DNA of 64,000 nucleotides from Macrostomum lignano. Its lineage: Eukaryota. The translations under genes and the position numbers were made by a program. Shown here piece after piece: positions 1 to 48,281 of this stretch. The DNA is taken from assembly GCA_002269645.1 (NCBI GenBank), contig NIVC01000032.1, positions 620,001-684,000 on the forward strand, given 5' to 3'. A model generated the notes under the pieces. That model had not been told where the DNA came from. It made no database searches and saw nothing but the letters and a program-made list of their open reading frames with translations. Position 1 is the stretch's first letter. Every line of letters starts with the position of its first letter.

Positions 1-3000
1 ACAATTGTCGACGTGCCAGCGGGAGCCATCATTGAGGATGACGGTGGTGGCGCTCGCGATCCGGGAGATCTCACGAGGCTCGGACAGGCGGCTGCTTAGC
101 TTGCCGCGGGCGAACGGCCGCTTCACCCGCACCCAGTCGCCGACCATGAAAGTCGGCGGGGGTCTCCTGGTCGAGTTGAGCTGGTTGAAAACTCGCTGCT
201 GTTTCCGCTTGATGCCGGCCGCCAGTCTGTGCCGCGCTGCCGTCCTTGGCTGTAGGGCTGTCAGGGGAGTGCTGATCTTCCGGCCTGTCATCAGCTCCGC
301 CGGCGAAACTCCAGTCAGTGCATGCGGGGTGGCTCTGTACGACCACAGCAGTGCCTTCACCGCGTCCTTAAAGTCATAGCCCTCCTCCAAGTGCGTCTTG
401 AGGCCGTCCTTGAGAAACCGGTTGAAACGCTCCACCGCCGCGTTGCCCTGAGGGTGGTAGTGCGGCGACTGCCGATGCTGGATGCCACAGCGCCGGAGAA
501 AATCCTCGAAATCACCGGACACGAACTGAGGCCCTCCATCTGTGTTGATACGTACTCTTCGGCAGCCCCCAACGACTAAACCACGTTGTCAAGGCGTCGA
601 TGACATCAGCGCTTGTGATGGTTGACATGCAGGCAGCCTCCGGCCACTTTGAGTGCAAGTCGTACAGCACCAGGATGAAGCGGCAGGAGTTCGGAGCCGA
701 GTGCAGCTCCCCAAAGATGTCTAGCTGAAGCTCCTCCCATGGACGCGTCGGCCACTTTGTCGGGGTCAGAACCGTCTTGGATGGCTTGAAATTCTTCTCG
801 CTTAGCCGACAGGCCTCACAGTGCCGCACGAACTCCTCAATGTGCTGGTCGATTTGCGGCCACCAGACAGCGTCCCGACAGTGCTGCTTCATTCTGCTCA
901 CGCCGAGGTGTCCGAAGTGTGCCAGCTTCAGCGTCTTCTCTCTCAGGGATGCGGGGATCACCGCTCGAGTGCCGTTGGCCAGGCACTTGCCGTCATTCCA
1001 GGCCGTCAGCTGCATTCGAATCCTCCAGAACGGCTGCAACTCCGACCGCAGATGCTTGATGGAGCTCGGCCACCCCTGGAGCGTCAGAGCTATCACTTCG
1101 CTTATTACCGGGTCCTGCAGGGATGCCTCGGCCAACTCGCTTGCGCTGACAACCTCCAACGCGCCCGATAACAATACGGCATTCACCTGGTGCTCGGTCG
1201 GATCTTCAGCGCAATCTTCTCCGAAAGCGCCATGGCGTGACAAAAAGTCGGGCACGATGTTCTTCTTGCCGGGAACGTGGCACACTTGGAAGTCGTACGC
1301 GAGCAGGCGGTCGGCCCATCGGTGCAGCCGCAAAGGTCGGTGGCCGCTGCCTTGAGCCGTCAGCAGCGTCGTCAGAGCCTGGTGATCGGTGTGCAGTTCG
1401 AATCTCCGGCCGAACAGGAAGTAGTGCCAACGCTCGCAGGCGAAGATACATGCCAGCGCCTCTCTTTCTGACGCGGAGTACTTGCGCTCGGTCGCCGACA
1501 GAGTCCTCGACGCGAAAGCAACTGGCTTGCGAACGCCAGCGCTGTCTTCTTGCATCAACACGGCACCCAGAGCGTGCGCAGAGCTGTCGCAGGCCACGAT
1601 TATCTTGTCGTCGGGACAGAAGAATCGCAGGCACGTTGGAGACACTACCATTTTCTTAAGCCTCCAAAAGGCCTTCTGGCAGTCCGCTGTCCAGTTCCAA
1701 GGCTGGTCCTTGCGAAGTAGCTGCAGCAGCGGCTCGGCGATGTCGGATAGGTTGTGTAGGAAGTTCGAGTAAAACTTTACCATTCCGAGAAATGAGGCCA
1801 CCGCCTCGGTGTTCTGAGGCTCCGGCACCGCTTCGATGGCTTCCACATTGGACTGCATCGGCTGAAGGCCTCTCGCCGAGACGATGTAGCCCAGAAACTG
1901 CACGGACTCTGCAGCCCACTGGCACTTGGCGGTGTTAAGCGTTACGCCATGGGCGAGCAGCCGGTCCAGCACTGCCGTGAGCCGCCGCCGGTGCTCCGTC
2001 TCGTTGGCAGCATGCACAACGATATCATCAATGTAGTGCAGCGTCCCCAAACAGCCGTGGAGAATCTTACTAAGCACCTTCTGAAAGGCTGCTGGAGCGC
2101 TGTTAAGGCCGTAGCAGACGCGCTTGTACCGGTAAAGGCCTTTCTCCGTGATGAAGGCCGTTAGGTCCCGCCGGTCTTCCGCCAGTTCCAGCTGCAGGTA
2201 CGAAGAGTTCAAATCGAGCTTAGTGAACACGGTCGAGCCCTTGAACTCCGTCGTCAGCTCCTCGAAAGTTGGCAGCGGCTGCTTATCCGGCACTATAGCC
2301 TTGTTTGGACACCTGAGGTCGTTGCAGATTCTGATTTTACCTTCGGGCTTCGGGACGATCACCAGGTTCGAAATCCACTCGGAAGCTTGGATCTCCTCGA
2401 CGATGTCGTCTGCCAACAGCTGGTCGATCTCCGCCTGGACCTTGTCCTTAATGCTGAGTGGAATACGGCGGAGCGGCTGCGCTACCGGAGGCACGGCCGG
2501 GTTCAGCCTGGGCCGGTGCTCGAATCCTCGGATCCGCCCGAGCCCCTGCGCCAGAGGCTTGAAGCGCTCGGGAAGCCAGGTCGGCAGCTCTGCTGTTTTA
2601 TCGACTGTGCGCACCAGGTCGCCGTCCCTGTCCACCACCTGGAAGTTGAGGTGCTGCATCAAGTCCGCGCCCATGATATCGGAGCCTTGTTGCACCACGG
2701 TGAAGCAGAAAAACGGCACCTGCTGGTCTCGGTAGTTGACGGAAAGCACTGCCTCGCCCACTACACTGATCGCCTCGCCGTTGTACGCGATTAGCTTCTT
2801 GGTCGACGGCTGCAGTGGCACCCGGTTTCCGAGCTTTCTGAAGGTCTTTTCCGACAGGATGGACACCTTGGCTCCAGAGTCCACGAGCAGATTCAGCCAG
2901 GTGCCTTGCACCTTCAGCCGGCAGCGGATGTCGGCGCTGGCAGCACCGCGAACTGTGTACACGGCGTGGTCGCTATCGTCCACGACCTCGGCGACCTTGG

Positions 3001-3799
3001 CTCCCTGCGACCGGCAAACCCGGCCGAAATGGTTCGCCCGACCGCAGACATGGCACATCTTGCCTTCAGCTGGACAGCGAGTTCGGCTGGTGTGTCCGCC
3101 TCCGCACTTCGAGCAGCGCTCGCGATCCGCTGATCGCCTCTGACCTCCATCTTTCCTGTCGGCTTGCAGTCGGACTCTCTTCACCTCTTCTCCCAGCTGG
3201 GCTCCGGAAGCAGCTGCGCCTCCCATCTCGATCACGCCGGCCTCGGCGATGCTGGTCTCCCACTGCTGGCTCAGAGTCACGGCCTTCTGCAGGGTCAGAC
3301 CGTCCTCAATCAGCAGGCGCTCTCGAATTCGCCTGTCGCTGACCTTCTCCACGATCTGGTCCCGAATCATTTCTTCCATCATGTCGCGGAACTCACATGA
3401 GCCAGCTAGAGCATACAGGGCCGCCACAAAGTCCGCAATCTTTTCACCGGGACGCTGACTGCGCTGCCGAAACTTGTGGCGCTCGGCCACCACGTTGACT
3501 TTGACCCCGAACTACTCGTCCAGAATCGCGATTGTCGCAGCGAATCCTGTCGGAGCCGGAGTCCTCGTTGCCGCCACAGCCGTGAAGACTCGCTGGCCTT
3601 CAGCGCCCAGGCAGTGCAGCAGCAGCGCACGCCTCCTCGCCTCCGGCAGAGTGTCATAACCGGCCGCCAGCAGGTAATTGTCAAACAGAGACTTCCACTC
3701 TTTCCACGGCCTCGTCGGTCGGCCTGGCTGCGGCAGGAATTGATCTGGCGGCGATACGCTGATCCGCGGCGCTTCTGTTGAGGAATTGTCGCTTGCCAT
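1..3799 (-). pseudogene. Gag-Pol polyprotein with two lesions
   Basis: In-frame TAG at 3512-3514 inside the capsid (ILDE*FGVKVNVVAER). 4-bp insertion at 549-554 in the integrase; removing it gives WGLPKSINTDGGPQFVSGDFEDFLRRCGIQHRQSPHYHPQGNAAVERFN, which is open to base 1. Confidence 0.92.
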
Positions 3800-8348: not shown

Positions 8349-8831
8349 ATGACTCTTCCTCACCCTCCAACCTGCCAGCAGCCATCTTACGCTTATTCCA
8401 ATCCGGTACTGACTCAGCCTCAGCCGCAGCAGATGCAGATGAACAGTCAAGTGAACATCACAATGAGCACAACGGACCAATCGAAAAAGTTTGATCATCC
8501 TCGCGATTGGACGTCCGGTCTCTGCGGCTGCTGCGAGGACTTCTCTTCCTGCTGCTGCATCTGGCTGTGCGGGCCCTGCTACCTGTGCTGTTGTCTGTCC
8601 GAACGAATGGGCGAGAGCTGCTGCACCCCAGTCTGCCTGTCCTGCGCCCATCCGGGCATGTTCCTGCCTGTGCTGCTCTATCGGACAAAACTCCGCTCCA
8701 AGTACAACATCAGAGGTAGCGCTATTGACGACTGCTGCTGCGCGATGTGCTGCTCGGCCTGCACCGCCTGCCAGATTAAACGGGAGCTCGACTACATTGA
8801 GCGATCCACCGGTCTGGCCGCGTTTGCTTAG
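8349..8831 (+). CDS. PLAC8: PLAC8/cornifelin-family Cys-rich protein, 160 aa, intronless CDS
   Basis: DWTSGLCGCCED...CGPC...YRTKLRSKYNIRGSAIDDCCCAMCCSACTACQIKREL matches the PLAC8 domain signature. Confidence 0.9.
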   Translation: MTLPHPPTCQQPSYAYSNPVLTQPQPQQMQMNSQVNITMSTTDQSKKFDHPRDWTSGLCGCCEDFSSCCCIWLCGPCYLCCCLSERMGESCCTPVCLSCAHPGMFLPVLLYRTKLRSKYNIRGSAIDDCCCAMCCSACTACQIKRELDYIERSTGLAAFA

Positions 8832-9522: not shown

Positions 9523-10480
9523 CGAGTGTCATCCCAAAAGTTTCAGCAAACGCCTATTAATTTTCAACAAACGAGTGTCAGAACAATGAACATGTCAAAA
9601 ACCTTCAAAATAACTTCCGTTGACTTGAATTGTGCGCTCCCAGCGGCCAGGCAACTTCTGAATGCCGTCAGCAGCGCTGGATTCGCACAGGTCTTTTGCA
9701 ATGCGGCCGACCTCGCTGATCAGGTCATCCAGGCAATGGAAACGACGCCCTCGGAGCTGGTTATTAAGCTTCGGAAAAAGGTCGAAATCGCAGGGACTGA
9801 GGTCTGGGGAGTAAGGAGGATGAGGCAGCACCTCCCACTGGTAGTCCCGCAGTAGGTCCTGCACAATGCGGGCTGTGTGCGAACTGGCATTGTCGTGCAG
9901 AAGAAGTGGACCAAGTTCCAGGGTCTGTGGCCGCTTTTTGCGCAAGGCAGGCCGAAGATGGTGAATAATGAAGCTCGACGAGGGGATTCCGGACAGCTCA
10001 GTCATTTCTTCGCATGTCCAACGGCGATCGATGTTCAGCAGCCCTTGGATCAAACTCGATGTTCAACTCTGTGCGAGCTTCTTTTGGCCTTCCTCGTCCT
10101 CGACATCATCCTCGACATCAGAGCGGCCATTCTTGAATCGACTGTACCAGTCGTACACGGCTCGCTGGCTCATCGCATTTGGCCCATGGGCCTGCAGCAA
10201 CTGACGGTGAATTTGAGCTGCAGGGACACCACGAAGACATTCCGTTTTAATGTATGAGCGCTGCTCCAAGTTCGACGGAAATTCCATTTTATCGTTGTCG
10301 GCCGATGTTTGATTTAGTATCTCACAAAATGTTCTTTAGAAAATAGAATTTGCAGCTAGAATGCTAAAAACTTAGAGACCCGAAATATGCTCATCTTTCG
10401 TGTGGTATAAGTGCTGTAGTCCTAAAAGTTGTCTATGGCACAAAATCATTCGATTGCTGAAACTTTTGGGATGACCCTCG
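9523..10480 (-). mobile_element. Mariner (D34D) DNA transposon, internally deleted, 958 bp
   Basis: 27-bp TIRs CGAG(T/G)GTCATCCCAAAAGTTTCAGCAA at 9523-9549 and 10454-10480 (1 mismatch). TA TSD at 9521-22 and 10481-82. Transposase remnants: HTH N-terminus (10287-10063) and HDNA-x-HPPYSPDLSPCDF with 34-residue spacing. WVPHEL and the first catalytic Asp are deleted. Confidence 0.95.
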
Positions 10481-12084: not shown

Positions 12085-12593
12085 CTAGCCTCTGTACAAA
12101 CTAGCTTTTGTACACAATTTAGCCCTCTGTACACATAGCCCTCTGTACACCTAGCCCGATCAGTACACCTAGCCCTCAGTACTCATAGCCCTCAGTACAC
12201 ATAGCCCCCTGTACACCTAGCCCCCTGTACACCTAGCTCCCTGTACACCTAGCCCCCTGTACACCTAGCCCCCTGTACACCTAGCCCCCTGTACACCTAG
12301 CCCCCTGTACACCTAGCCCTGTGTACACATAGCCCTTTGTACACCTAGCCCTCTGTACACCTAGCCTTTTGTACACCTAGCCCTCAGTACACATAGCCCT
12401 CAGTACACATAGCCCCCTGAACACCTAGCCACCTGTACACCTAGCCACCTGTACACCTAGCCCCCTGTACACCTAGCCCCCTGTACACCTAGCCCCCCTG
12501 TACACCTAGCCCCCTGTACACCTAGCCCCCTGTACACCTAGCCCTCTGTACACCTAGCCCTCTGTACACCTAGCCCTCTGTACACCTAGCCCT
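12085..12593. repeat. 16-17 bp minisatellite CTGTACACCTAGCCC (array S)
   Basis: About 30 tandem units; the same family is at 24642-24918. Confidence 0.92.
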
Positions 12594-13010
12594 CCTTTGA
12601 CCTCTCTACCTCTTAAGCTACGAGCTCATTTTCATTCTATCTCTAGCCAATTATTACCAACGCGGTCGCAACCAGTTTTAATTTGCTTCGTCCGCTGGTC
12701 TGTCTCGTTCATAAATCTAGAGCCAAACGATCATGCTTCTAGCTAACACGCTAGCTAAATTAGTTACATTAACTGACTCTCTTATTTCTTCAAGAATGGA
12801 AGCGTAGAACAAGCCTTCACTTCTTTCTCGTGCTACGTGGAACCGCAACATATGGAGCATGCAGCATAAAGGCTACAACTTTACTTAACACCCGTGTATA
12901 TTTTTAGAAGCGCAAAATCTTTTTCGATATCAAGCCTAATAAAATAAGAGTTTATTAACAGTCACACTGAAAAGCAAACAGACTACTAAAAGTGTCTGGC
13001 TGCATTAAAA

Positions 13011-16000
13011 ATGAGAATCAGCAATGTCAATATCTACCGGGCTGATCTGCCCCTGCTAGACGAAAGCTACAACTGGTCCGATGGAAAATCCGTTCGAGTA
13101 CTCGATGCCACTGTGGTCGAATTGGTCACCGATTCCGGTATTCGAGGCTACGGCGAGTGCTGCCCGTTGGGACCGAACTACCTGCCGAGCTATGCTAACG
13201 GGCTGAGGACCGGATTATCGGAACTGCGACCGACTTTGATTGGCATGGACCCCTTGGACATTGAAGTGGTCAACAGGCAGATGGACTACAACTTGAAGGT
13301 GATGACCTGCACTCTAACCTTTTTCCTATCCTAGTGAAGATTCCAATCCCCTGTCTTATGTACATTCCAATCCACTGTCTTATGTACATTCCAATCCACT
13401 GTCTTATGTACATTCCAATCCACTGTCTTATGTACATTCCAATCCACTGTCTTATGTACATTCCAATCCACTGTCTTATGTACATTCCAATCCACTGTCT
13501 TATGTACATTCCAATCTACTGTCTTATGTACATTCCAATCCACTGTCTTATGTACATTCCAATCCCCTGTCGATGGACATTCCAATCCCCTGTCTATGGA
13601 CATTCCAATCCCCTGTCTATGGACATTCCAATCCCCTGTCTATGGACATTCCAATCCCCTGTCTATGGACATTCCAATCCTCTGTCTATGGACATTCCAA
13701 TCCTCTGTCTATGGACATTCCAATCCCTTGCCGCCTATGGACATCATAATCCACTGTCTATGAACATTTCTGTCGCCTGTCTGTTGGCCTAATCAACTTT
13801 GATTCAGAGCAGCCGCCTATAGTTATGTAAAGTACATTTCAAATCACAGGGCCATCCCTACGTAAAATCGCCGGTCGACATGGCGCTTTGGGACATCTTG
13901 GGAAAGTTCACCGGACTGCCAGTGTGCACCCTGCTCGGCGGTCGATTCGGAGACTACGTGCCGCTGTATCGGCCAATCAGTCAGGGCAGCCCGGAGGAGA
14001 TGGTGGAGAGAGTGCGGCACTATCGCGCCACCAGAGGCTACCGGCGCTTCCAACTGAAGGTTGGCGGCAGTGATGAGATGCTGGACGCTGCTCGGATTCG
14101 AGCGGTTCGATCGGCACTTACGGATGGCGAACTACTGGTGGCGGATGCCAACACGGGTACAAGAGTTCGATTGCAATTCAGAGTGTTGATGCAGGCGATA
14201 AACACCTGAGGAAGGGCCACTAGTTAGGGTGTTGGTGCAGGCAATAAACCCCTGAGGAAGGGCCACTAGTTGGGGTGTTGGTGCAGGCAATAAACCCCTG
14301 AGGAAGGGCGTGTTGGGGTGTTAGGGTGTTAGTGCAGGGGTGTTAGTGCAGGCGATAAAACCCTGAGGAAGGGCCGCTAGTTGGGGTGTTGGTGCAGGCG
14401 ATGAAACCCTGCGGAAGGGCCGGCTAGTTGGGGTGTTGGTGCAGGCGATAAACCCCTGAGGAAGGGCCACTAGTTGGGGTTTTGGTGCAGGCGATAAACC
14501 CCTGAGGAAGGGCCGGCTAGTTGGGGTGTTGGTGCAGGCGATAAACCCCTGAGGAAGGGCCACTAGTTGGGGTTTTGGTGCAGGCGATAAACCCCTGAGG
14601 AAGGGCCACTAGTTGGGGTGTTGGTGCAGGCGATAAACCCCTGAGGAAGGGACACTAGTTGTGGTGTTGGTGCAGGCGATAAACCCCTGAGGAAGGGCCG
14701 GCTAGTTGGGGTGTTGGTGCAGGCGATAAACCCCTGAGGAAGGGCCACTAGTTGGGGTTTTGGTGCAGGCGATAAACCCCTGAGGAAGGGCCACTAGTTG
14801 GGGTGTTGGTGCAGGCGATAAACCCCTGAGGAAGGGACACTAGTTGTGGTGTTGGTACAGGCAATAAAACCCTGGAGAAGGGCCGCTAGTTGGGGTGTTG
14901 GTGCAGGCGATAAAACCCTGCGGAAGGGCCGCTAGTTGGGGTGTTGGTGCAGGCAATAAAACCCTGGGGAAGGGCCGGCTAGTTGGGGTGTTGGTACAAA
15001 CGATAAAACCCTGAGGAAGGGCCGCTAGTTGGGGTGTTGGTGCAGGCAATAAAACCCTGCGGAAGGGCCGGCTAGTTGGGGTGTTGGTGCAAACGATAAA
15101 ACCCTGAGGAAGGGCCGCCAGTTGTGGTGTTGGTGCAGGCGATAAACCCCTGAGGAAGGGACACTAGTTGTGGTGTTGGTACAGGCGATAAAACCCTGCG
15201 GAAGGGCCGCTAGTTGGGGTGTTGGTGCAGGCGATAAACCCCTGAGGAAGGGCGTGTTGGGGTGTTAGCGTGTTAGTGCAGGGGTGTTAGTGCAGGCGAT
15301 AAAACCCTGAGGAAGGGCCGCTAGTTGGGGTGTTGGTGCAGGCGATAAAACCCTGCGGAAGGGCCGCTAGTTGGGGTGTTGGTGCAGGCAATAAAACCCT
15401 GCGGAAGGGCCGGCTAGTTGGGGTGTTGGTGCAAACGATAAAACCCTGAGGAAGGGCCGCCAGTTGGGGTGTTGGTGCAGGCAATAAAACCCTGCGGAAG
15501 GGCCGGCTAGTTGGGGTTTTGGTGCAGGCCATAAAACCTGCGTAAGGGTCACTAATTGCGATGGTCAATTCAGGCAATAAAACCCTGAGGAAGGGCCGCT
15601 AGTTGGGGTGTTGGTGCAGGCGATAAACCCCTGAGGAAGGGCCGCTAGTTGGGGTGTGGTGCAGGCAATAAAACCCTGCGGAAGGGCCGCTAGTTGGGGT
15701 GTTGGTGCAGGCGATAAAACCCTGAGGAAGGGCCGCTAGTTGGGGTGTTGGTGCAGTCGATAAACCCCTGAGGAAGGGCCGCTAGTTGGGGTGTGGTGCA
15801 GGCGATAAAACCCCGGGGGATCGTGTCACTACCGTATTTAGGACTGTTCTGCATGCATTAAAGTCTTCAAGTGAAATTAAATAAACTTTTCTAATAAAAA
15901 TCTTACCTAGGATGGCTCCCGCACCAAGCGGTTCGAGTGTGCCAGTCTGTCTCCGACCTGGATGTGTACATCGAACAGCCCTGCGCCACTATGGATCAGT

Positions 16001-16416
16001 GCCGACAGGTGCGCGAGGCGAGCGCCTGCGGCCTGCCGTTTATCTTAGACGAGAGCATCGACTCACTGGATAGCTTGCTGTCAATGCGCGGAGCGGCAGA
16101 CTGCATCAATATCAAAATTAGCAAAGTTGGCGGCCTCACAAAAGCCAGGCAGATGAGAGACCTGGCTGTTCACCTGGGCCTAGCCATGGTGCTGGAGGAC
16201 TGCTGGGGCAGCGACTTCGCCACGGCCGCCATTGCGCATCTGGCGCACAGCACGCCAGAGAAGCACAGGCTGATGAGCGCTGACTTCAATACCTACCATC
16301 CGGTGAGAACAGGACACCTGGCCAAGCCGCTAACCAATGACAGGGGCGGCATGGTGGCGCCGGGGGGGCCGGGCCTCGGTGTGGAGCCGAACTTTGCCGC
16401 TCTGATGAAAGTCTGA
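13011..16416 (+). CDS. Enolase-superfamily (mandelate racemase/MLE) enzyme, cis-3-hydroxy-L-proline dehydratase-like, 366 aa; exons 13011-13298, 13850-14156, 15911-16416
   Basis: GT-AG introns (phase 0 and 1) join one 1101-nt frame. Motifs: GECCPLGPNYLPSY, GHPYVKSPVD, FQLKVGG, metal ligands DANTGW/EQPC/LDE, NIKISKVGGLTKA, EDCWG and PGLG. This is the motif set of bacterial c3LHyp dehydratases (recognised from memory, not searched). Confidence 0.9.
13335..13770. repeat. Intronic minisatellite: 24-bp TACATTCCAATCCACTGTCTTATG switching to 23-bp GACATTCCAATCCCCTGTCTATG
   Basis: Two adjacent homogeneous sub-arrays inside intron 1 of the dehydratase gene. Confidence 0.92.
14190..15815. repeat. Intronic 46-47 bp minisatellite GTTGGGGTGTTGGTGCAGGCGATAAACCCCTGAGGAAGGGCCACTA
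   Basis: About 35 units filling intron 2 of the dehydratase gene. Confidence 0.93.
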
Positions 16417-16679
16417 ACTGCTGCTGATGAAAGCTGACGTGAAGTAGGCTTCAGTCAAATTGTAAAATCTGTTGTTAAAAAGAAAAAAATACAGAGCTAT
16501 AGAGATCGACATTGTTTTTGTTTAACCTATAGGGTGCAGAATGAATCAACCGATGAATCAACCAGTCAATCCTCAACGATCATAATTATGCTAATAAAAC
16601 AAATTAACACACCAATTATTTTGTTAAATAGTCACTCGACCAATAAAATTTATCGAGCAATCATTCATCAATCAATTAC

Positions 16680-18067: not shown

Positions 18068-21000
18068 TGTTGTGGGTTGATGGCTTTGCCATAGACATTT
18101 TTGTTACGCGACTGCGTTGATGACTTGAACCATGCTATTGAGTTATGAAATAAATAATAGACGCGTCAGAGGTCAGCAGACCGCTAGACTGACAATTGCT
18201 AAAGGCTAAAAGCCAAAAGCACAACAGTGGCGTCGGCAAGCATAGGCTACGAAAATGCCTGGAAGTACGCCAGCATCGCCAACTAAAGGAGTTGGTAAAA
18301 CGGTTTCGAGCGACAAAGCACCACCGCTTGCGATCTCGTCGAAATCAGTCCAAGCGACAAAGTCGGCAACAGCGACAGCGCAGAACCCAAGCGCACAAGT
18401 ATCGAGAGGACAGCAAGTTGACATCGAAAAACTCGATGAAAGTTCGAACTTCCAGAGGTGGTTGGACCGATTCACACTGTGCAGCGAACTCAACGGCTGG
18501 CAGGACGACACGAAAAACAAGCTGCTGCTGATGAAGCTCAGCACCAAGCTGTACGACGCATTGGCAGATCGAGCCGCTCCAAGAAGCCGGGAGAAAAGAG
18601 CTTCGATGAACTGACCAAACTACTGGCCAGCATCCTGGAACCAAAGACGTTCGTCATGGCTGAGAGATTCAATTTCCAGCATATCACTCGCACGGCATCA
18701 ATGAGCATTCGTGAGTATGCACAGCAACTCTGCATGCAGGCAGACAAGTGTCAGTTTGGCCTATCCAGAGATGAGAGACTGAGAGATCAGCTCGTATTCG
18801 GTTTGAATGACAAGGTGGCCATCAGCAAGTTATTGGAACAGGACTTCAGCACTCTCACGTTTGAGACAGCTATCAACATCGCTGAGGCGCACCAGAACCT
18901 ATCACAAACGCAAATACTAAAGGGTTGCACCAGTCAGCCGCAGTCTTCTGAAGTAATGAAAATTTTAGCATCGGTGACCAGAGGCTCCCACTCTACGAGC
19001 TCCAAGTGTGGCAGATGTGGCACAATGCATGGCTCCAATGGAGGGTGTCCTGCGAAAGGAAAAACGTGCAACAAATGTGGCATGCAAAACCACTTCGCAA
19101 CAGTTTGCAAAACGAAATCAACTGGTTTTGGCAAAGGCCGAAAATCGTTCAAAAGCCCGTCAGCATCTGGTCAATTTAGGCGAGCTGCAGTGTGCCCAAG
19201 GACCACAAGCTTTGTAGATGCAAGCGAAGCTGAACAGGAGGATTGTTTTCACATTCGACATCCCGTTGATAGCTACACCGTGCCTGTTAGGCTCAGACAC
19301 ACGAGCGGGTCGATGCTTAGCGTGAACGCACAAATCGATACTGGGGCAGGAGTTTCGGTAATGTCAAAAACGATCTGGAAACGATTGGGTTGTCCAAAGC
19401 TGACACCTACAGACACTGTTCTGACAACATACGCTGATACGCAGATGAAGGTCTTTGGAACACACGACACTGAGTTGGAGTACAATGACGAGTTCATTCC
19501 AATCACATTCTTCATTGTGGAATCGCAGAGGAACTTTGTTCTGGTTGGCCGAGACAAGCTCAATTTCACGCTAAACGCTGTAGACAACAGCTGCACATCG
19601 GCAACCCAGTCATGCGAATTTCCACCAGTAACTCTTAAGATCAAGGAAGGAACCACTCCAATTCATTGCAAACCCAGGCCGCTACCCTTCGCACTCAGAC
19701 AGGGAGTCAAGGATGAAATCGATCGGTTGCTTGAAGAAGACACCATCAAGCCCGTCAAGTTCAGTGAACGGGCCTCACCAATTGTCGTGGTCAAGAAACC
19801 TTCTGGAAAGCTCAGACTTTGCGTCGACTACAAGGTGACAATTAATCAATTCTCATCTTATCAACGATTCATATCCGATGCCTGCACCTGACGAAGTGAT
19901 TGCAACTGCTGCTGGCAGCCGGATATACACTCGTCTGGACCTAGAGAAAGCTTATCACCAGATCCCACTAGATGAAGCTTCCAAAGAGCTGACAGTAATG
20001 TCAACACCATTTGGGATGTTCGCTTTCAACAAGCTTCCGTTCGGAGTGAAAACAGCACCTGCGATCTTCCAGCGGTACATTAGCCAAGTCCTACAAGGAA
20101 TTCCTGGCGTCATTGCCTACGTAGACGACATATTGATATGCGGCAAAGGCGTAGAACAATTGGCAGTTCGTGAGACGGAAGTATTGCATCGACTAAACCA
20201 GCAAGGATTGAAGATCAACACGGCGAAAAGTGAATTCCGCAAGACTTCGATCAAGTTTCTAGGCTACTTATTGGAAGGAGATCAGCTCAAGCCGGACCCA
20301 GCCAAAGTGAAGGCAATCCAGGACATGACACCACCGCAGAACGTTGGCGAGCTTGAATCTTTCCTGGGTCTCGTAAATTTTAGCGGCAAGTTCATCAGAA
20401 ACCTAGCTGCACTGACCAAGCCTCTCAATCGACTAAGAAAGAAAAATGAGGACTTCGTGTGGACAAAGGAGTGTCAAATAGCATTTGACGAAATCAAGGT
20501 CACTCTCTCTGATCAATCGAGTCTTCAAATATTTGATCCTGAGAAGCCCATTGAACTGGAATGCGACAGTTCTCAGCGAGCTCTGGGCGGAGTGTTGACA
20601 CAAAGCGGTCAAGTCGTGCTGTACATGAGCAAGACTCTGTCTGACGCCGAAACAAAATATTCGCAAATAGAGCGTGAAGGCCTGGCACTGGTTTGGTGCA
20701 TTCAAAGATGCCATCGGTTCTTGTATGGCCGGAGGTTCACACTGATAACTGATCACCGGCCCCTCACATACATATTCGCGCCAGACAAACAGCTGCCCAC
20801 CAGAGTTTCAGCTCGACTACAACGATGGGCAATCATGCTAGCTGCTTATGACTATGTCATACAGTATCGACCATCAAAGCTAATGCTGTCGGATGCGCTA
20901 TCTCGACTGGTGCCCGCTAAGCCGAATGCACAGACAGCATCGATCGGACTCCTCGAAGCTGACAACCCGGGAGTAATTCAGCTGGATCGCATTGCACACG

Positions 21001-22411
21001 CAACCAGAGAGGACCCGGAGTTCAGATGCCTGGGCGCAGCATAATTAACAATAATCTATTTGACGACCCACACCTACTCAGCTACTCGAAGGTTCAAGAT
21101 GAGCTAACTGTCAATGATGGAATTATTTACAGAATGAACAGAATTGTATTGCCTCGTGTCCTGAGAGAAACTGCCCTGGCAGCTGTACACTCAACGCACC
21201 TTGGGGTGGAAAAGTCAAAGTCAATTTTGAGGGAACAGTTCTGGTGGCCACAGATGGACCGTGACATCGCTGACTACATTGGACGATGCAACGTGTGCAA
21301 CGCGTACAAGTCCAGAAATAAGAACTTTCGGCACTCGTGGCCAGAACCTGACAACCCCTGGGAGCGAGTGCACATTGATTTTGCCGGTCCGATAGAGGGC
21401 AAGTACCTACTCATCATTGTGGATGCGCACTCGATCTACCCGGAAGTCTTCATCACGAGCGACATGAAGGCCGACACAGTCATTTCCAGACTTAGAAGAT
21501 TGTTCTCACAACAGGGGGTGCCCAAGTGTCTCGTGTCAGACAACGGCCCTAGTTTTGTGAGCGAAGCGGTGACCGGCTGGCTCACCCAGATTGGCTGTTC
21601 GCACATCACAACGCCCGCCTACCATCCACAGAGCAACGGCATTGCAGAGCGAATGGTGCGAACCGTCAAAGAGACAATCAAGACCAATGGTTTATCCCAA
21701 AGAAGTATTGACAGATTTCTACTGTTCTACAGAGCTGCCAAAGGCAAGCAGCAAGCATCACCGTCCGAGTTGTTGAACGGCAGACAAATAAGACTCCCCA
21801 TCTCGGAGAGCAGCACTCAGTCCAAGTGGATCCCAGGAGAATCACTCATCTACCGTGCATCGAGTTCTCATGAGCCACGAACTGTGAGATTCGCCAAAAT
21901 GCTTGGCAGCAACACATCAGTCGTCACCACAGAGACTGGACGAAATCTAAAGACCCACCTCGATCAACTACGAATCGGTGAGGTACCTGAGGCTCACGGA
22001 AGTACGGAAATGGGGGATTCCAAGCCCGGTGGCAGCAGTCCAAGTGACGACGGCCAACAGACGCGTCCGTCATCGACAGACACTGAGATACTACCGGGAA
22101 CAGAACAAGCTGAGAGAGCACAACAGCAACAGACTGAGGTTGGAGTTCAATCCAAGCCGTCACCCAGGCGAAGCGAACGCTTGGCCAAGAAAACTAGAAT
22201 TTTTTATCGCACCTGAGTGATAATTGTACACCTACCTATAGAAGAGGGAGGGTGTTGTGGGTTGATGGCTTTGCCATAGACATTTTTGTTACGCGACTGC
22301 GTTGATGAATTGAACCATGCTATTGAGTTATGAAATAAATAATAGACGCGTCAGAGGTCAGCAGACCGCTAGACTGACAATTGCTAAAGGCTAAAAGCCA
22401 AAAGCACAACA
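18068..22411 (+). mobile_element. Full-length Ty3/Gypsy LTR retrotransposon, 4344 bp
   Basis: 159-bp LTRs at 18068-18226 and 22253-22411 (158/159 identical, TGTTGT...ACAACA). PBS TGGCGTCGG at 18228. PPT AGAAGAGGGAGGG at 22240-22252. TSD CATAC/CATAG (1 mismatch). Confidence 0.97.
18255..22216 (+). pseudogene. Gag-Pol broken by three frameshifts (about 18580, 19860, 21030)
   Basis: ORFs 18255-18614, 18458-19891, 19878-21044 and 21026-22216 tile gag (CCHC knuckle), protease IDTGA, RT YVDD, RNase H, and integrase HHCC plus D..D35E (IDFAG, SDNGPSF, AERMVR). Confidence 0.93.
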
Positions 22412-24641: not shown

Positions 24642-24918
24642 CCCTAGCCCTCGGTACATCTAGCCCTTTGTACACCTAGCCTTCTGTACACCTAGCCCTC
24701 TGTACACCTAGCCTTCTGTACACCTAGCCCTCTGTACACCTAGCCTTCTGTACACCTAGCCCTCTGTACACCTAGCCTTCTGTACACCTAGCCCTCTGTA
24801 CACCTAGCCTTCTGTACACCTAGCCCTCTGTACACCTAGCCTTCTGTACACCTAGCCCTCTGTACACCTAGCCTTCTGTACACCTAGCCCTCTGTACACC
24901 ATAACCTCTCTGTACACC
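24642..24918. repeat. 16-bp minisatellite CTGTACACCTAGCC(T/C)T (array S')
   Basis: Alternating CCTT/CCCT variants give a 32-bp dimer; same family as 12085-12593. Confidence 0.92.
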
Positions 24919-32063: not shown

Positions 32064-35000
32064 TCAGTTATTATCATTGGACTGATGAAGCATGGCGGTC
32101 AGCTCCAGACTCTCAGCAGGTGGTACTTCTTCGTGGCTGGCCTCAGCTTCCATAGTATTGTCTTGTCCTAGGTAGTCTTTCATAGCCTCTGGATGTTTGG
32201 CTACAGACCGGTGCTTCGCCTCTGGAGCAGCCGGTTCCGCGTTTCTGGGCAGCCAGGTGAGAAAAATAGCCGAGAACGTGTCACGAAACTGCTTCGACAT
32301 TGAGGTGTACAGCACAAAATTGACGCTGTTGTTAATCAGCGACAGAAGGTCCAGCAGGTCGCCTAGCGGAGTGTAGACGTTGTCTTCAAACGAATCGGAC
32401 ACGAAGCACAGCAACGACATGACACCCTGCGGCAGCTCGGTGATGAGGAACACGATCACAATGGCCAGCAACATTCGGGTGGTTCGTTGCTCTCGCTTGT
32501 CCGCTCGCTGCTCTCTTCGACCGGCCGGGACGCCGTTGTTGGACGGACTGGCGGCTGCTGCGGCGGCCGCGGCGGCGACCGCGGCTGGGTTCCTGTTCAG
32601 CAGCTTACGCCGGCGTCTGGCCGACTTCGACAGCTGACCGATAAGCAGCACGGTCATGGCGCTGAGCATGAGGCAGGGCAGGATCTTGTATAATATGGCT
32701 ATTGTCCAATAGTTGCTCAGCACCAGAGTGTCGCTAACCCGCTGAGCCGCGTCGATAAAGTACAGAGTGGCGTTGGTGACAGGAGATCGGCAGGCCCTAG
32801 GCGCGTTGACTAGGTAATTCGGTATGCTAGTCAGGCAGCACGCGATGCAGATGGCAGCGATACAGATTGACACGTTCCTGTGGCTGGCAAGCCTCGCTCC
32901 AGTGGTCGGAAATGCGATGTACAGGTAGCGGAACACGGCCAGGGCCACGGTGAGCCAGCAGGCGGTTGTGTGCAGCACCAGCACCAGGCTGATGGTGAAC
33001 AGAGAGTACAGAATCCAGCCGTACTGCTGCGTGTGCGGCTCTGCGAGTTCGGCGGGGACTCCTCGACGACCGGTCGGATTTTTCAAGGTGAAGTGAGCCA
33101 CCTGGCGTTGGGGCGTTGAAGGGTAACTACAGGTGAGCTAGTTCTTTAATTATTGGTTATGCATTGGTGTAATTACTGAGCTAAGATACTAGAGTCAGTG
33201 GTGTAGCCAGTGAGGGGGTAGCCTCTCACCTCTGACGGTATTGCGGCTGGGTGACTGACGTCTCTGGTGCTGACATCTACTCAAATAAACTGACGTCTCT
33301 GGTGCTGACATCTACTCAAATAAACTGACGTCTCTGGTGCTGACATCTACTCAAATAAACTGACGTCTCTGGTGCTGACATCTACTCAAATAAACTGACG
33401 TCTCTGGTGCTGACATCTACTCAAATAAACTGACGTCTCTGTTGCTGACATCTACTCAAATAAACTGACATCTCTGGTGCTGACATCTACTCAAATAAAC
33501 TGACGTCTCTGGTGGTGACATCTACTCAAATAAACTGACGTCTCTGGTGCTGACATCTACTCAAATAAACTGACGTCTCTGATGCTGACATCTACTCAAA
33601 TAAACTGACGTCTCTGGCGCTGACATCTACTCAAATAAACTGACGTCTCTGATGCTGACATCTACTAAAATAAACTGACGTCTCTGATGCTGACATCTAC
33701 TCAAATAAACTGACGTCTCTGATGCTGACATCTACTCAAATAAACTGACGTCTCTGGTGCTGACATCTACTCAAATAAACTGACGTCTCTGTTGCTGACA
33801 TCTACTCAAATAAACTGACGTCTCTGATACTGACATCTACTCAAATAAACTGACGTCTCTGGTGCTGACATCTACTCAAATAAACTGACGTCTTTGATAC
33901 TGACATCTACTCAAATAAACTGACGTCTCTGGTGCTGACATCTACTCAAATAAACTGACGTCTCTGATGCTGACATCTACTCAAATAAACTGACGTCTCT
34001 GATGCTGACATCTACTAAAATAAACTGACGTCTCTGGCGCTGACATCTACTCAAATAAACTGACGTCTTTGATACTGACATCTACTCAAATAAACTGACG
34101 TCTCTGGTGCTGACATCTACTCAAATAAACTGACGTCTCTGTTGCTGACATCTACTCAAATAAACTGACATCTCTGGTGCTGACATCTACTCAAATAAAC
34201 TGACGTCTCTGGTGGTGACATCTACTCAAATAAACTGACGTCTCTGGTGCTGACATCTACTCAAATAAACTGACGTCTCTGATGCTGACATCTACTCAAA
34301 TAAACTGACGTCTCTGGTGCTGACATCTACTAAAATAAACTGACGTCTCTGATGCTGACATCTACTCAAATAAACTGACGTCTCTGATGCTGACATCTAC
34401 TCAAATAAACTGACGTCTCTGATGCTGACATCTACTCAAATAAACTGACGTCTCTGATGCTGACATCTACTCAAATAAACTGACGTCTCTGATGCTGACA
34501 TCTACTCAAATAAACTGACGTCTCTGATGCTGAAATCTACTCAAATAAACTGACGTCTCTGATGCTGACATCTACTCAAATAAACTGACGTCTCTGATGC
34601 TGACATCTACTCAAATAAACTGACGTCTCTGATGCTGACATCTACTCAAATAAACTGACGTCTCTGATGCTGACATCTACTCAAATAAACTGACGTCTCT
34701 GATGCTGACATCTACTCAAATAAACTGACGTCTCTGATGCTGACATCTACTCAAATAAACTGACGTCTCTGATGCTGACATCTACTCAAATAAACTGACG
34801 TCTCTGATGCTGACATCTACTCAAATAAACTGACGTCTTTGATACTGACATCTACTCATATAAACTGACGTCTCTGGTGCTGACATCTACTCAAATAAAC
34901 TGACGTCTTTGATACTGACATCTACTCAAATAAACTGACGTCTCTGATACTGACATCTACTCAAATAAACTGACGTCTCTGGCGCTGACATCTACTCAAA

Positions 35001-36041
35001 TAAACTGACGTCTCTGGTGCTGACATCTACTCAAATAAACTGACGTCTCTGATACTGACATCTACTCAAATAAACTGACGTCTCTGGCGCTGACATCTAC
35101 TCAAATAAACTGACGTCTCTGGCGCTGACATCTACTCAAATAAACTGACGTCTCTGGCGCTGACATCTTCTCAAATAAACTGACGTCTCTGGCGCTGACA
35201 TCTACTCAAATAAACTGACGTCTCTGGTGCTGACATCTACTCAAATAAACTGACGTCTCTGATACTGACATCTACTCAAATAAACTGACGTCTCTGGCGC
35301 TGACATCTACTCAAATAAACTGACGTCTCTGATACTGACATCTACTCAAATAAACTGACGTCTCTGGCGCTGACATCTACTCAAATAAACTGACGTCTCT
35401 GATACTGACATCTACTCAAATAAACTGACGTCTCTGGCGCTGACATCTACTCAAATAAACTGACGTCTCTGATACTGACATCTACTCAAATAAACTGACG
35501 TCTCTGGCGCTGACATCTACTCAAATAAACTGACGTCTCTGGCGCTGACATCTACTCAAATAAACTGACGTCTCTGGCGCTGACATCTACTCAAATAAAC
35601 TGACGTCTCTGATACTGACATCTACTCAAATAAACTGACGTCTCTGGTGCTGACATCTACTCAAATAAACTGATACTTTATATCTTGTGCTGCAAATGAT
35701 TGAGGTACTTTATTCCTGTCAAGCAGTACTAGGCGCTTGTGAACTCCAATTCAGACGCAGCTCACCTGAAAGAAATAGGTCAGCATGGTGAACAGGTCAG
35801 CAGCTGCGACGGCAATCAAAATCCGATTGACCGAGCTAACGGACATGCTCTTCCTGGTGAGCACGGCGATGTTCGCCACGTTGGCAACAACCCCCAGCAG
35901 GCAGAGGGTGACGCTTACGTAGCCATGAACGGTGCCATAAATTTCCTGGAACCGCACCAATCCCAGGTGCACGGAGGGCACCGAAACTGACAAGTTGCTG
36001 CAACATCTCGTCAGGTCATCCAAGCTGATGGTGGCTCCCAT
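32064..36041 (-). CDS. Rhodopsin-class peptide GPCR, myosuppressin/FMRFamide receptor (DmsR/Srw-type)-like, about 437 aa; exons 36041-35766 and 33101-32064
   Basis: TM1 GVVANVANIAVL, TM2 AVAAADLF, TM3 WLTVALAVFRY, TM5 KILPC, TM6 RTTRMLL...ELPQG, TM7 NNSVNFVLY...SKQFR. Phase-0 GT-AG intron at 35765-33102. The start codon (36041, followed by an NLS sequon) is inferred. Confidence 0.92.
33255..35673. repeat. Intronic 35-bp minisatellite CTGACGTCTCTG(G/A)TGCTGACATCTACTCAAATAAA
   Basis: About 69 near-identical units filling about 90% of the GPCR intron. Confidence 0.96.
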
Positions 36042-36561
36042 AGCTGCAACTTTAGCGTAATTATGCCTCGTAACCTGTGCGGGCGCGTATCGGATATCAG
36101 CAGTTGCAGGATGATGTTCATATAGCATTAGAACGTGACTCGTATCCAATCTTAAGATAATTACAGGCACCGCTGCAAGTCCTAATGCGGGTAGAGCGCT
36201 AAGAGGAAGTAATGGGCTGCTATAACAGGAAGATGACTTGATGGGACTTTTTCAGCTTGAGGAGTGATGAACTGGATTGAATCGACAAGCGAAAATCCTA
36301 CTTCAGTTCGATGGAAATAGAAAATTCGCTGAAAAACGAGTCATTTAGCTGAGCAGTTCTGCCTAAACCATGGTTAAGTATCTATATTGTACCTATTGAG
36401 TGCTCAAAGCTGCTTTCCACTACATATATTCCAGTGCGTTTACTGCAGTTCTTTATCAGCAGTTTGGCCTAAATATTGTGCCCATACTGAACTGGATATG
36501 AACCGATGATATTCCATAATAAACTCCGCGTGATTTGCGTCTGTGACTCAAAAATTCAAGC

Positions 36562-44330: not shown

Positions 44331-45512
44331 AATCTTGTTCTTGAAAGTACATCTGAATTTCTAACGCAGTTTTTTCAATTTTTCAGAAGCAATTTCTCGA
44401 ATGTCCTGCCTTCATTATCGGTAGAAATTTTGAAGAAAAACCAGAACCATAAAAGTATTGCATTGACCTTTCCAACACAACCCCAGCGAATTTCTATTTT
44501 CTGTGCTTCCTTAGGCCAAGTCCTTCGATTTTTTTCAGGCAACAAAGAAGTTTCAGAAAGCCATAAAAGAAGACTATACAGACAGCAGTTTTTTTACAGG
44601 CAGCAATGAGGCGCATTCCATGGCTTTGCAAATCTTGTACTATCGGAGGAGTTGCAGGGACGTCGTGCTCTGCAGCAGCTGATGCAGCAGCGGTTTGCGT
44701 GCCAGAATTAATTGGGGAAAAAGCAGGAAAACAAGAAGCAAGCGACTTCAAGCCTGACAGGTATATAAATACACTTGCACGAGCGGCTCGAAGCTTCAGG
44801 TCCCCCGGGTAGCTGGGCCACTGCTAATCAGATAGCTGAATTACGGGTTAGATAGATAATCTCCTAGAGGATAGAGGTCTAACTACAAGGTAATTAGCGC
44901 AGGAGGATATACTGCATGAGACACATTGACATCAATTGAAATGAAGGGTTATGAAATTAAGCAAGTCTAAATCAATTTTAAGGGACCCAGCAGATGGACT
45001 ACCCCTATAGTTGTAACCTTTTCTCTTCTCGCCCTTAGGGAGCAAATTTAATATTAATTGAAAAATGTGCATCCTAATGAGGCATATAAAACAGGGAATT
45101 GGAATCTTTGTGCCAAAATTAATTAAATTTGCACACGAGATGCCTTTTGGGGGCTGCGTGAGATGATGAAGATTCTGGTGCACTAATCTCTAAGCTGATT
45201 CGAGATAAGAGAAATTTTTATTAAAAGCAGAAAAGCCAGGTGTTCCACAATCGAGACAGATTTTGATGGCTGGTTTGAGGCAAATTCAAAGACTGATGTA
45301 GGGAGAAGACACTAGCAATGGAGCATTGGATTGTAAATATATTGATGTAGAATCTGTAAGCATGGCGCTTACTGAAAGAAGCACACGATATGATATTAAT
45401 TTAACCCATTGACGCTCATTTCAAAGCAATTATTTCACCTCTCTGCAAACTGCTCGTGTTATGCACTCATTATGCTACTAACAAGTAACACGGCTAGATA
45501 CTCGTAGCCTAG

Positions 45513-47493
<1,981 letters not shown>

Positions 47494-48281
47494 ACTGATT
47501 GAGAGCATGCTAATTAAAATCAACAAGAATAGCTTTCAGGTTTATGTCAAGCTTCTCAACCTGCTTGTACAACAAGAGGATTAAGCAGCTCACTCTCAAA
47601 TCCCCTCTGTCGCTTGCACACAAGCCTGACATTTTTCTTTCTCCTTTTCAATATCCCCGGAATCTCGATCGCCTAAAACAAGCCCCAACGCACCTGTAGA
47701 CCTCACTCGGTCCTCAGCTGCTCCAGAGCACGCTTCCTAATAATATCACTTTTATCTCCGCTGGGGCCACCCGGCCCCTGTTCCCAAATTCAAAATGTTT
47801 CACAAATTTCAATCTGGATTTACCAATCCATGGGCGAGCAGATGTGAAACTTAATCCGCTTCAATACCGGAATATACGATTACGAGTATAAACGGCTCTT
47901 GTTTCACAAGTACAGTCAAGTGAAGCGATAAACAAAACCAGAGTGGAAGCTGAGGCGAAGAGGAAAGGGGATGAGAAGGAGAGGATGGAGAAAATGGGGA
48001 AGATGAGAGAGTGGAGACTGGGGGAGTGGAGTACAGTGTGTACAGAATAGAGAGGAGAGAAGGGAGAGGGGAGAGGGGAGAGCAGGAGAGAAGGGAGAGG
48101 GGAGAGGGGAGAGGGAGAGGGGAGAGGAGAGAAGGGAGAGGGGAGAGGGGAGAGGAGAGAGGGGAGAGTGGAGACAGAAGAAGGGAGAAAGGAGTGTGGA
48201 CTCTGGAGAGAACGGATTAGCGGGAGTACGTGTAAGCAATGACCGTTGAAGAGACGAGGGAGACAGGTGATAGGTGATAAG

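Follow-up and report, generated by a model that had tools for sequence, protein, structure and literature searches.

The gene is located on the plus strand of a contiguous 64-kb stretch of Macrostomum lignano DNA (the window) and consists of three exons and two introns (Table 1). Joining of the exons yielded 1101 nt, i.e., 366 codons and a TGA, and the spliced translation did not contain any internal stop. Met1 coincides with the start of the homology with bacterial and animal orthologues. When the spliced protein was compared with the window using tblastn, exactly three blocks were found, which correspond to the three exons (E 8e-59, 4e-65, and 1e-111), and a tandem duplicate or second gene copy within the window was thus ruled out. 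The Pfam domains MR_MLE_N (E 3.9e-14) and MR_MLE_C (E 3.4e-42) were both detected. The 366-residue frame across two GT-AG introns that had been proposed in the original prediction was thus recovered by exon joining, domain search, and tblastn, confirming a real three-exon gene of the enolase superfamily, far beyond chance. The M. lignano proteome contains proteins that match at 99% and 91%, and its near-identical copies have kept the same sequence. An exact-sequence look-up of the spliced 366-aa protein in a collection of 15 billion proteins gave no entry.

Table 1. Exons, introns, and flanking or internal sequence elements of the dehydratase-like gene. Positions refer to the window.
Feature	Position	Strand	Remarks
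Pyrimidine-rich tract ending in AG (tatatttttag)	12896..12909	+	About 100 nt before the ATG; may belong to a 5'-UTR or act as a trans-splice acceptor
In-frame TAA	12987..12989		24 nt before the ATG
Exon 1	13011..13298	+	ATG to codon 96, end ...AAG|gt; codes for the larger part of the N-terminal capping domain (MR_MLE_N), with GECCPLGPNYLPSY within
Intron 1	13299..13849	+	551 nt, GT-AG, phase 0, K96/G97 boundary (DYNLK|GHPYVK)
Minisatellite in intron 1	13340..13782		24-nt unit; most of the intron
Exon 2	13850..14156	+	Codons 97-198 and first base of G199; GHPYVK, catalytic Lys166 (FQLKVGG), metal ligand Asp195 (ADANT)
Intron 2	14157..15910	+	1754 nt, GT-AG, phase 1, splits the Gly199 codon (AAC ACG G|gt...ag|GA TGG)
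Minisatellite in intron 2	14183..15813		46-nt unit; fills the intron
Exon 3	15911..16416	+	Remainder of G199 to V366 and TGA; Glu220 (YIEQPC), Asp245 (ILDES), Lys267 (NIKISKVGG), EDCWG
Run of seven G in exon 3	16362..16368		Point at which the UniProt model A0A1I8GLQ4 leaves the frame
Candidate polyadenylation signals (two AATAAA hexamers)	16593, 16642 (16593..16647)	+	177 and 226 nt past the stop

The surroundings of the gene are those of an animal genome. Its neighbours in the window are PLAC8, GPCR, and MBOAT genes, a transposase remnant, and retrotransposons; animal genes and retrotransposons are present on both flanks. About 30 minisatellite arrays of the type seen in the introns are distributed over the window. 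The GC3 value of the gene is 0.71, compared with 0.71 for PLAC8 and 0.70 for the GPCR gene. A scan for a sigma-70 promoter or a terminator upstream of the ATG was negative, which is weak evidence but fits a eukaryotic gene. A neighbourhood of hydroxyproline catabolic genes was not found around the gene in the window; an animal genome would not be expected to show such clustering, and its absence is therefore of little weight. At the jellyfish loci, acceptor-like tracts comparable to that listed in Table 1 were also seen before the ATG.

The protein has the capping domain and the modified TIM barrel of the MLE subgroup, with Asp, Glu, and Asp as Mg2+ ligands at strands 3-5 and two acid/base lysines at strands 2 and 6. 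The best match in the PDB was 4mgg, the enzyme of Labrenzia aggregata (E 5e-119, 195 of 357 residues or 55% identical), followed by uncharacterised structures (E 1e-83) and the HpbD epimerases 2pmq/4h2h (E 3e-51). K166, D195, E220, D245, and K267 all align with identical residues of 4mgg, and the three metal ligands are invariant across the animal orthologues. An AF2 model (pLDDT 82, pTM 0.86) also had 4mgg as top structural match (TM 0.91), and the TM values with structures of the MLE subgroup were 0.85-0.92. Thus, both sequence and fold place the worm protein nearest to the characterised L. aggregata enzyme and not to a neighbouring specificity family. The motifs on which intact catalytic and metal residues had been predicted (FQLK166, D195-ANTGW, E220-QP, LD245-E, NIK267-ISK, and EDCWG) are indeed present.

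The assignment to the family NF043002 was less complete. It was clearly the top family, with 124 bits for the second one, but the score of 469.1 bits was 31 bits short of the curated cut-off of 500, whereas ten other sequences of the animal clade scored 560-594 bits and all passed. The worm protein is therefore termed dehydratase-like here and is regarded as an orthologue on the basis of phylogeny. The family has 143 columns with a conservation of 95% or more, of which the worm protein has kept 132 (92%) and departs at 11. Departures of the same extent were seen in Capitella (11) and in the sequence P0032 (10), yet both are above the cut-off. Residues 323-342 are divergent, contain a two-residue insertion, and were poorly modelled, and the C-terminus is shorter.

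Orthologues were found in four other animal phyla, i.e., Porifera, Cnidaria, Annelida, and Brachiopoda. They include the demosponge Halichondria panicea (XP_064401517.1), the scyphozoans Sanderia, Aurelia, and Rhopilema (XP_065054496.1), and Lingula, Owenia, and Capitella, the latter three with 58% identity to the worm protein. Molluscs, ecdysozoans, and deuterostomes were not represented among the best 120 matches listed. The bacterial members stem from at least 573 species-level genomes, including Planctomycetota, Acidobacteriota, Poribacteria, Chloroflexota, Gemmatimonadota, and Spirochaetia, and the description of the motif set as proteobacterial was thus too narrow. The sponge and jellyfish copies carry an automatic annotation as enolase-type 3-hydroxyproline dehydratase. 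A literature search did not reveal any paper on an animal copy of this enzyme type, nor relevant work on horizontal transfer in Macrostomum.

In neighbour-joining trees, the only type of tree built, all 60 animal sequences formed one group against 333 bacterial sequences, and the worm sequence was within this group in every tree. The bootstrap support was moderate, i.e., 0.69-0.73 with 315 sequences and 0.81 with 393 sequences, which included 78 named bacterial species. When each animal group was placed alone among the bacteria, five of the seven joined the same small bacterial neighbourhood, the exceptions being Lingula and Owenia. In addition, 14 signature columns were found with states that two or more animal groups have in common and that bacteria rarely show. 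The worm protein has six of these 14 residues, while the mean of 255 bacterial sequences was 0.74 and the maximum was five. Raw pairwise distance was rejected as a test of origin: the animal-animal and animal-bacterium ranges overlap (0.37-0.6), which leaves topology, signature columns, and introns as the informative criteria. The worm has the longest branch of the animal group, within which it paired with sponges (0.61-0.64) and not with annelids. This pairing conflicts with the species tree and is read as a long-branch effect. The sequence P0100, which had paired with the worm in the first tree (0.81), was rejected as a flatworm relative; it is 84% identical to the Halichondria type and is therefore a sponge sequence.

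Capitella teleta (59 nt) and Owenia fusiformis (1002 nt) each have an intron that matches intron 2 of the worm in codon and phase. This match could be a parallel insertion, the chance of which was estimated to be about 1-2% over about 1100 possible sites, an estimate that ignores site preference. The position of intron 1 is absent from Lingula, Capitella, and Owenia, and these three species have two further intron positions in common. At the sponge and jellyfish loci examined the coding sequence is intronless. The pattern is a tidy case for the study of intron gain and loss, with intronless sponge and jellyfish genes, shared spiralian positions, and one retained and one new intron in the worm.

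Taken together, one animal group, orthologues in four other phyla, and an intron shared with annelids are best explained by an old animal gene that has been patchily retained, with a probability of roughly 75%. The gene would have been present before the divergence of sponges, cnidarians, and bilaterians, introns would have been gained in the spiralian lineage, of which the worm kept one and added one of its own, and the gene would have disappeared from many animal lineages. The original prediction had offered a patchily retained ancestral gene as an alternative, and it is this alternative that the animal group, the four phyla, and the shared intron favour. The leading idea, a bacterial gene domesticated by this animal, was not supported in view of the single animal group (bootstrap 0.69-0.81) and the annelid-shared intron. 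A metazoan clade with vertical descent had been named as the outcome that would speak against an acquisition; the broad clade was essentially recovered, but not a congruence with the species tree inside it.

Several other explanations were weighed against an old animal gene. The bacterial-like protein sequence is the sole argument for an assembly chimera or for contamination with bacterial DNA, and this explanation is already refuted by the sequence: two spliceosomal introns with host-style minisatellites, animal genes and retrotransposons on both sides in a contiguous window, a host-like GC3, and no sigma-70-like promoter upstream place the gene physically in host DNA. The introns and minisatellites had been named as arguments against contamination before. 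Transfer of a bacterial LhpJ gene into the Macrostomum or flatworm lineage, followed by the gain of two introns, would account for the overwhelmingly bacterial membership of the family, for the worm-only intron 1, and for an identity to bacteria (up to about 61%) that equals that to animals (58-61%). It is nevertheless very improbable and already disfavoured, because the worm has the codon and phase of intron 2 in common with two annelids, was placed within the animal group by all trees, exceeds each of the 255 bacterial sequences in animal signature residues, has a host-like codon composition, and has orthologues in four other phyla. The gene is neither nested in bacteria apart from the animals nor absent from related phyla, as would be typical of a recent transfer into a single lineage.

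A further alternative to a single ancient animal gene is that sponges, jellyfish, and spiralians each received the gene independently from similar bacteria, e.g., symbionts. The patchy animal distribution, the intronless coding sequences of the examined sponges and jellyfish, and the support of just 0.69-0.81 for a single group by a distance method are in line with this. Moreover, part of the nearest bacterial sequences were found in host-associated metagenomes of the same kind, where their contigs encode ankyrin-repeat proteins as well. However, the observed trees unite all 60 animal sequences, five of the seven animal groups join the same bacterial neighbourhood when placed alone, and 14 columns have animal-shared, bacteria-rare states, so that this explanation is rated improbable. 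The last alternative concerns function rather than origin. The worm protein is under the cut-off and on the longest branch, and thus its substrate could have drifted to another hydroxyproline isomer, proline betaine, or an unrelated compound, or the gene could be decaying. The 469 bits versus 560-594 bits in other animals, the 11 altered conserved columns, the divergent segment with its insertion, the shorter C-terminus, and the presence of 4-hydroxyproline betaine 2-epimerases (2pmq/4h2h, E 3e-51) in the subgroup are in favour. In contrast, the frame is intact, none of the five catalytic and metal residues has been lost, 92% of the highly conserved columns are kept, equally deviating sequences of Capitella and P0032 pass the cut-off, and the near-identical M. 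lignano proteome copies have the same sequence. A real animal orthologue with a changed substrate or in decay is therefore regarded as unlikely.

With regard to the ultimate origin of the old animal gene, the animal group is surrounded by bacterial sequences of high similarity (about 55-61% identity), and the likeliest source is therefore a single transfer from a bacterium to an animal that took place no later than the base of Metazoa. We infer both the timing and the direction of this transfer; a bacterial origin, if there was one, most likely predates the splits between sponges, cnidarians, and bilaterians. The gene would be expressed, and its putative substrate is a 3-hydroxyproline; the activity that defines the enzyme family in vitro is the dehydration and 2-epimerisation of cis-3-hydroxy-L-proline. 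Following the L. aggregata enzyme as described in PMC5144071, Mg2+ would be held by Asp195, Glu220, and Asp245, Lys166 or Lys267 would abstract the alpha-proton, the resulting enolate would be stabilised by the metal, and the partner lysine would either reprotonate the enolate (2-epimerisation) or help the 3-OH to leave, which would yield delta1-pyrroline-2-carboxylate. A reductase could then convert this product to L-proline. The worm protein does not have an N-terminal extension over the bacterial enzymes and is therefore probably cytosolic. According to PMC5144071, animal collagen contains trans-3- and not cis-3-hydroxyproline, which counts against a firm assignment of the physiological substrate. 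The use of hydroxyprolines from collagen or food, as suggested in the original prediction, is therefore speculative. A tentative scenario, given slightly less than an even chance, is that the single early transfer provided animals with an LhpJ-type enzyme that salvages microbial or dietary cis-3-hydroxyproline, or D/cis isomers made by epimerisation, into proline, and that it was kept in some marine lineages, most of them feeding on microbes or particles (sponges, scyphozoans, some annelids, Lingula, and Macrostomum) and lost repeatedly elsewhere.

If true, animals would own a second, unstudied 3-hydroxyproline route beside L3HYPDH. M. lignano, a laboratory model, is open to RNAi and expression mapping and could thus reveal the purpose of the enzyme. 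The results also correct the tempting story of a flatworm that stole a bacterial gene, and the worm gene is a clean example that calls in the style of an alien index need wide animal sampling and intron comparison.

The L3HYPDH-type 3-hydroxyproline dehydratase has a proline-racemase-like fold and is unrelated to the enolase type. Another type belongs to the aconitase superfamily, as stated in PMC5144071. Both form the same product, delta1-pyrroline-2-carboxylate, from a 3-hydroxyproline, but neither is related in sequence to the worm protein. HpbD (4-hydroxyproline betaine 2-epimerase/proline betaine racemase) is in the same MLE subgroup and has the same catalytic architecture, but it is far more distant (29-30% identity in the structural alignment) and is not the closest family. 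UniProt auto-naming labels some bacterial orthologues of the worm protein as HpbD-type. The L. aggregata enzyme, whose characterisation in 2015 (J Am Chem Soc 137:1388) is cited by PMC5144071, has in common with the worm protein the two-domain fold, 55% identity over the full length, the Mg2+ ligands, both lysines, the length, and the absence of extra domains. It differs in the 323-342 segment, the C-terminus, and the score relative to the curated NCBIfam cut-off, and the worm gene, whose activity is putative, is nuclear and eukaryotic, contains two introns, and lacks a hydroxyproline catabolic cluster around it. The orthologues of sponges, jellyfish, annelids, and Lingula have the animal group and signature residues in common with the worm copy, and two annelids also one intron position. 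In contrast to them, the worm copy evolves faster, lacks the other shared spiralian introns, and has one intron of its own, and both of its introns are inflated by minisatellites.

The dehydratase gene is composed of three exons, and its spliced reading frame comprises 1101 nt, i.e., 366 codons plus TGA, without an internal stop. Both introns start with GT and end with AG; thus, the gene structure of the original prediction was correct. The ATG is preceded by an in-frame TAA at a distance of 24 nt, and the homology to relatives starts with Met1. A tblastn search of the whole window with the gene product yielded only the three exon blocks (E values 8e-59, 4e-65, and 1e-111), and, thus, the window contains a single copy. 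Nearly all of intron 1 is filled by a minisatellite with a 24-nt unit (13340-13782), and nearly all of intron 2 by one with a 46-nt unit (14183-15813); about 30 unrelated minisatellite arrays are dispersed over the window. The same two splice junctions are used by independent M. lignano gene models in UniProt, which are the sole support for splicing and expression in vivo.

Features of the dehydratase gene and its surroundings
Feature	Position or length	Strand	Remark
Dehydratase exon 1	13011-13298	+	spliced reading frame
Dehydratase intron 1	551 nt	+	phase 0, between Lys96 and Gly97
Dehydratase exon 2	13850-14156	+	spliced reading frame
Dehydratase intron 2	1754 nt	+	phase 1, within Gly199 codon of DANTGW motif
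Dehydratase exon 3	15911-16416	+	spliced reading frame
Ty3/gypsy-like gag-pol frame	512-3493	-	protease, RT, RNase H, integrase
PLAC8-family ORF	8349-8831		
DDE_3 transposase remnant	9595-10053		
Ty3/gypsy-like gag-pol frame	18458-22216	+	three overlapping ORFs; protease, RT, RNase H, integrase
Srw/rhodopsin-type GPCR	35751-36170 and 32064-33101	-	two exons/ORFs
MBOAT exon	61929-62435		

The gene model is present in UniProt under a generic name, and two M. lignano proteins matched the gene product, A0A1I8GLQ4 (99%) and A0A1I8G9Z1 (91%), so that the window stems from M. lignano or a very close relative. Exon 3 contains a run of seven G (16362-16368), exactly at which A0A1I8GLQ4 leaves the frame of the window and terminates with 12 unrelated residues. 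This suggests that the other copy, or the other assembly, has a length difference or a sequencing error at this homopolymer. The conserved PGLG motif is kept in the window's version. Compared to 13850-13945, A0A1I8G9Z1 is missing a stretch of about 30 residues behind the intron-1 junction (GHPYVK...CTLLGG), with CAPCS in its place; the probable cause is a wrongly called acceptor, or else an indel in a copy that is paralogous or homeologous.

The GC3 value of the dehydratase gene (0.71) equals those of the PLAC8 ORF (0.71) and the GPCR ORF (0.70), and a promoter scan found no sigma-70-type promoter upstream of the gene. Bacterial contamination is excluded; the animal-type neighbours and the introns filled with host-style minisatellites also count against it. 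The segment between the two GPCR ORFs is almost wholly a 35-nt minisatellite (33254-35673, 69 copies), so that both genes exhibit an intron filled in this way. One 16-nt minisatellite family (TAGCCCCCTGTACACC / CCTAGCCCTCTGTACA) is found twice, at 12120-12592 and, 12 kb apart, at 24643-24918; the first array precedes the start codon of the dehydratase gene by about 420 nt. Tandem repeats make up a large share of the window, including a 2-kb (TAGA)n microsatellite (45510-47494, about 496 copies) and about 30 further long arrays.

In a first search, the proteins of Lingula anatina, Owenia fusiformis, and Capitella teleta were 58% identical and were interspersed with proteins of bacterial metagenomes (56-62%). 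With a profile derived from animal sequences, a set of unnamed proteins ranked above every bacterial one, and a second profile retrieved a further set. The contigs of the jellyfish and sponge copies are of megabase scale and high coverage. Their uninterrupted coding sequences are flanked by AT-rich DNA with fragments of eukaryotic genes (acylglycerol kinase, GGACT) or with a reverse transcriptase. RefSeq already names these orthologues correctly; a literature search found no papers on any animal member of the family. All ten tested animal-clade proteins passed the cut-off of the curated model NF043002 (500 bits) with 560-594 bits, and the worm copy is the most divergent member.

In three jellyfish-type assemblies (loci L004-L007, Aurelia- and Rhopilema-type contigs) fragments of an acylglycerol-kinase-like gene (DAGK_cat, AGK_C) adjoin the intronless dehydratase gene, in two of them together with a GGACT-domain gene, which indicates a conserved local gene order within Scyphozoa. 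At these loci a pyrimidine-AG acceptor-like tract lies 30-45 nt upstream of each ATG. A further intronless orthologue, P0029 (L008, ENA ERZ25878582, 462-kb contig), has a eukaryote context with a reverse-transcriptase ORF nearby. It groups with the jellyfish (bootstrap 0.84-0.85), and its host is probably another cnidarian or belongs to a neighbouring phylum.

Neighbour-joining trees were calculated with Kimura-corrected and gamma-corrected distances. In the tree of 315 sequences a single group took in all 60 animal-context sequences (37 sponge-type, 17 scyphozoan, P0029, Lingula, Capitella, Owenia, the homologue P0032, and the worm; bootstrap 0.69-0.73), and it was recovered after 78 named bacterial species representatives had been added (393 sequences, 0.81). 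The sponge and the jellyfish groups had a support of 1.0 each. Resolution within the animal group was poor, and the weak worm-sponge pairing (0.61-0.64) is read here as a long-branch effect. Two checks were independent of attraction between animal lineages. In analyses of one animal lineage at a time plus the bacteria, five of the seven lineages, namely sponges, jellyfish, P0029, Capitella, and the worm, joined the same small neighbourhood, which comprises about 19 of 255 bacterial sequences. Fourteen signature columns, defined without the worm, have a residue that two or more animal groups share and that is rare among bacteria; at six of these the animal state is present in the worm, versus a bacterial mean of 0.74 and a maximum of 5 (255 sequences).

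The exon structures of Lingula, Capitella, and Owenia were rebuilt exactly from the genomic loci, and all introns were put on one alignment. Three positions are common to these species or to the two annelids. Worm intron 1 is so far unique in this comparison, while intron 2 is the same as an intron of Capitella and Owenia, in the Gly199 codon, in phase 1, and with identical local sequence (AAC ACN G/gt...ag/GN TGG). We estimate the probability of a chance coincidence at about 1-2% (about 1100 possible positions, ignoring proto-splice-site preference), which argues that the intron-bearing gene dates at least to the flatworm-annelid common ancestor. The headline of the original prediction, a bacterial gene domesticated by the worm, was wrong, because the worm lies inside the animal group and has the Gly199 intron in common with annelids. 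The worm gene belongs to an old animal gene family with patchy retention. Multiple parallel transfers into animals are considered unlikely. The best explanation for both the resemblance to bacterial enzymes and the intronless sponge and jellyfish coding sequences is one transfer that took place no later than the base of Metazoa.

The sequences that make up the closest bacterial neighbourhood are indeed bacterial and have dense operon-like contexts. One of the closest groups (L012/L013, ENA ERZ25068966 and ERZ25071132) shares 88% identity with a Spirochaetia MAG, stems from host-associated-style metagenomes, and adjoins ankyrin-repeat proteins and a DHDPS-family gene. These findings hint at symbiont-type bacteria as carriers of the nearest bacterial versions. 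At least 573 species-level genomes of bacteria from many phyla contain the family, and, thus, its designation as proteobacterial was too narrow. In P0003 (ENA, 449 aa), a bacterial-type homologue, about 80 capping-domain residues are tandemly duplicated (GEVCPLGPFYLPAYA...GHPYVKSGIDIACWDILGQ twice).

The worm protein contains the Pfam domains MR_MLE_N and MR_MLE_C. Its top curated family model, NF043002, gave 469.1 bits, 31 bits below the cut-off of 500, and the runner-up family reached only 124 bits. Of 143 alignment columns with a conservation of 95% or more in 314 relatives, the worm protein retains 132, and, thus, it is most likely an active enzyme with LhpJ-type chemistry and a correspondingly predicted substrate. 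In animal collagen trans-3-hydroxyproline occurs, not the cis-3 form (PMC5144071), and therefore a dietary or microbial source of the putative cis-3-hydroxyproline substrate is plausible. The AlphaFold2 model (pLDDT 82, pTM 0.86) is weak only at residues 323-342.

As summarized in PMC5144071 from Zhang et al. 2015, L. aggregata LhpJ catalyzes the reversible 2-epimerisation of cis-3-hydroxy-L-proline and its irreversible dehydration to delta1-pyrroline-2-carboxylate, with two lysines as acid/base catalysts and Mg2+ held by two Asp and one Glu. Among solved structures, the worm protein matches 4mgg of Labrenzia aggregata IAM 12614 best (E 5e-119, 55% identity, with 195 identities in 357 aligned positions), and 4mgg is also the top PDB match to the AlphaFold2 model (TM 0.91). 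K166, D195, E220, D245, and K267 of the worm are identical in the 4mgg alignment, and the predicted family assignment was correct.
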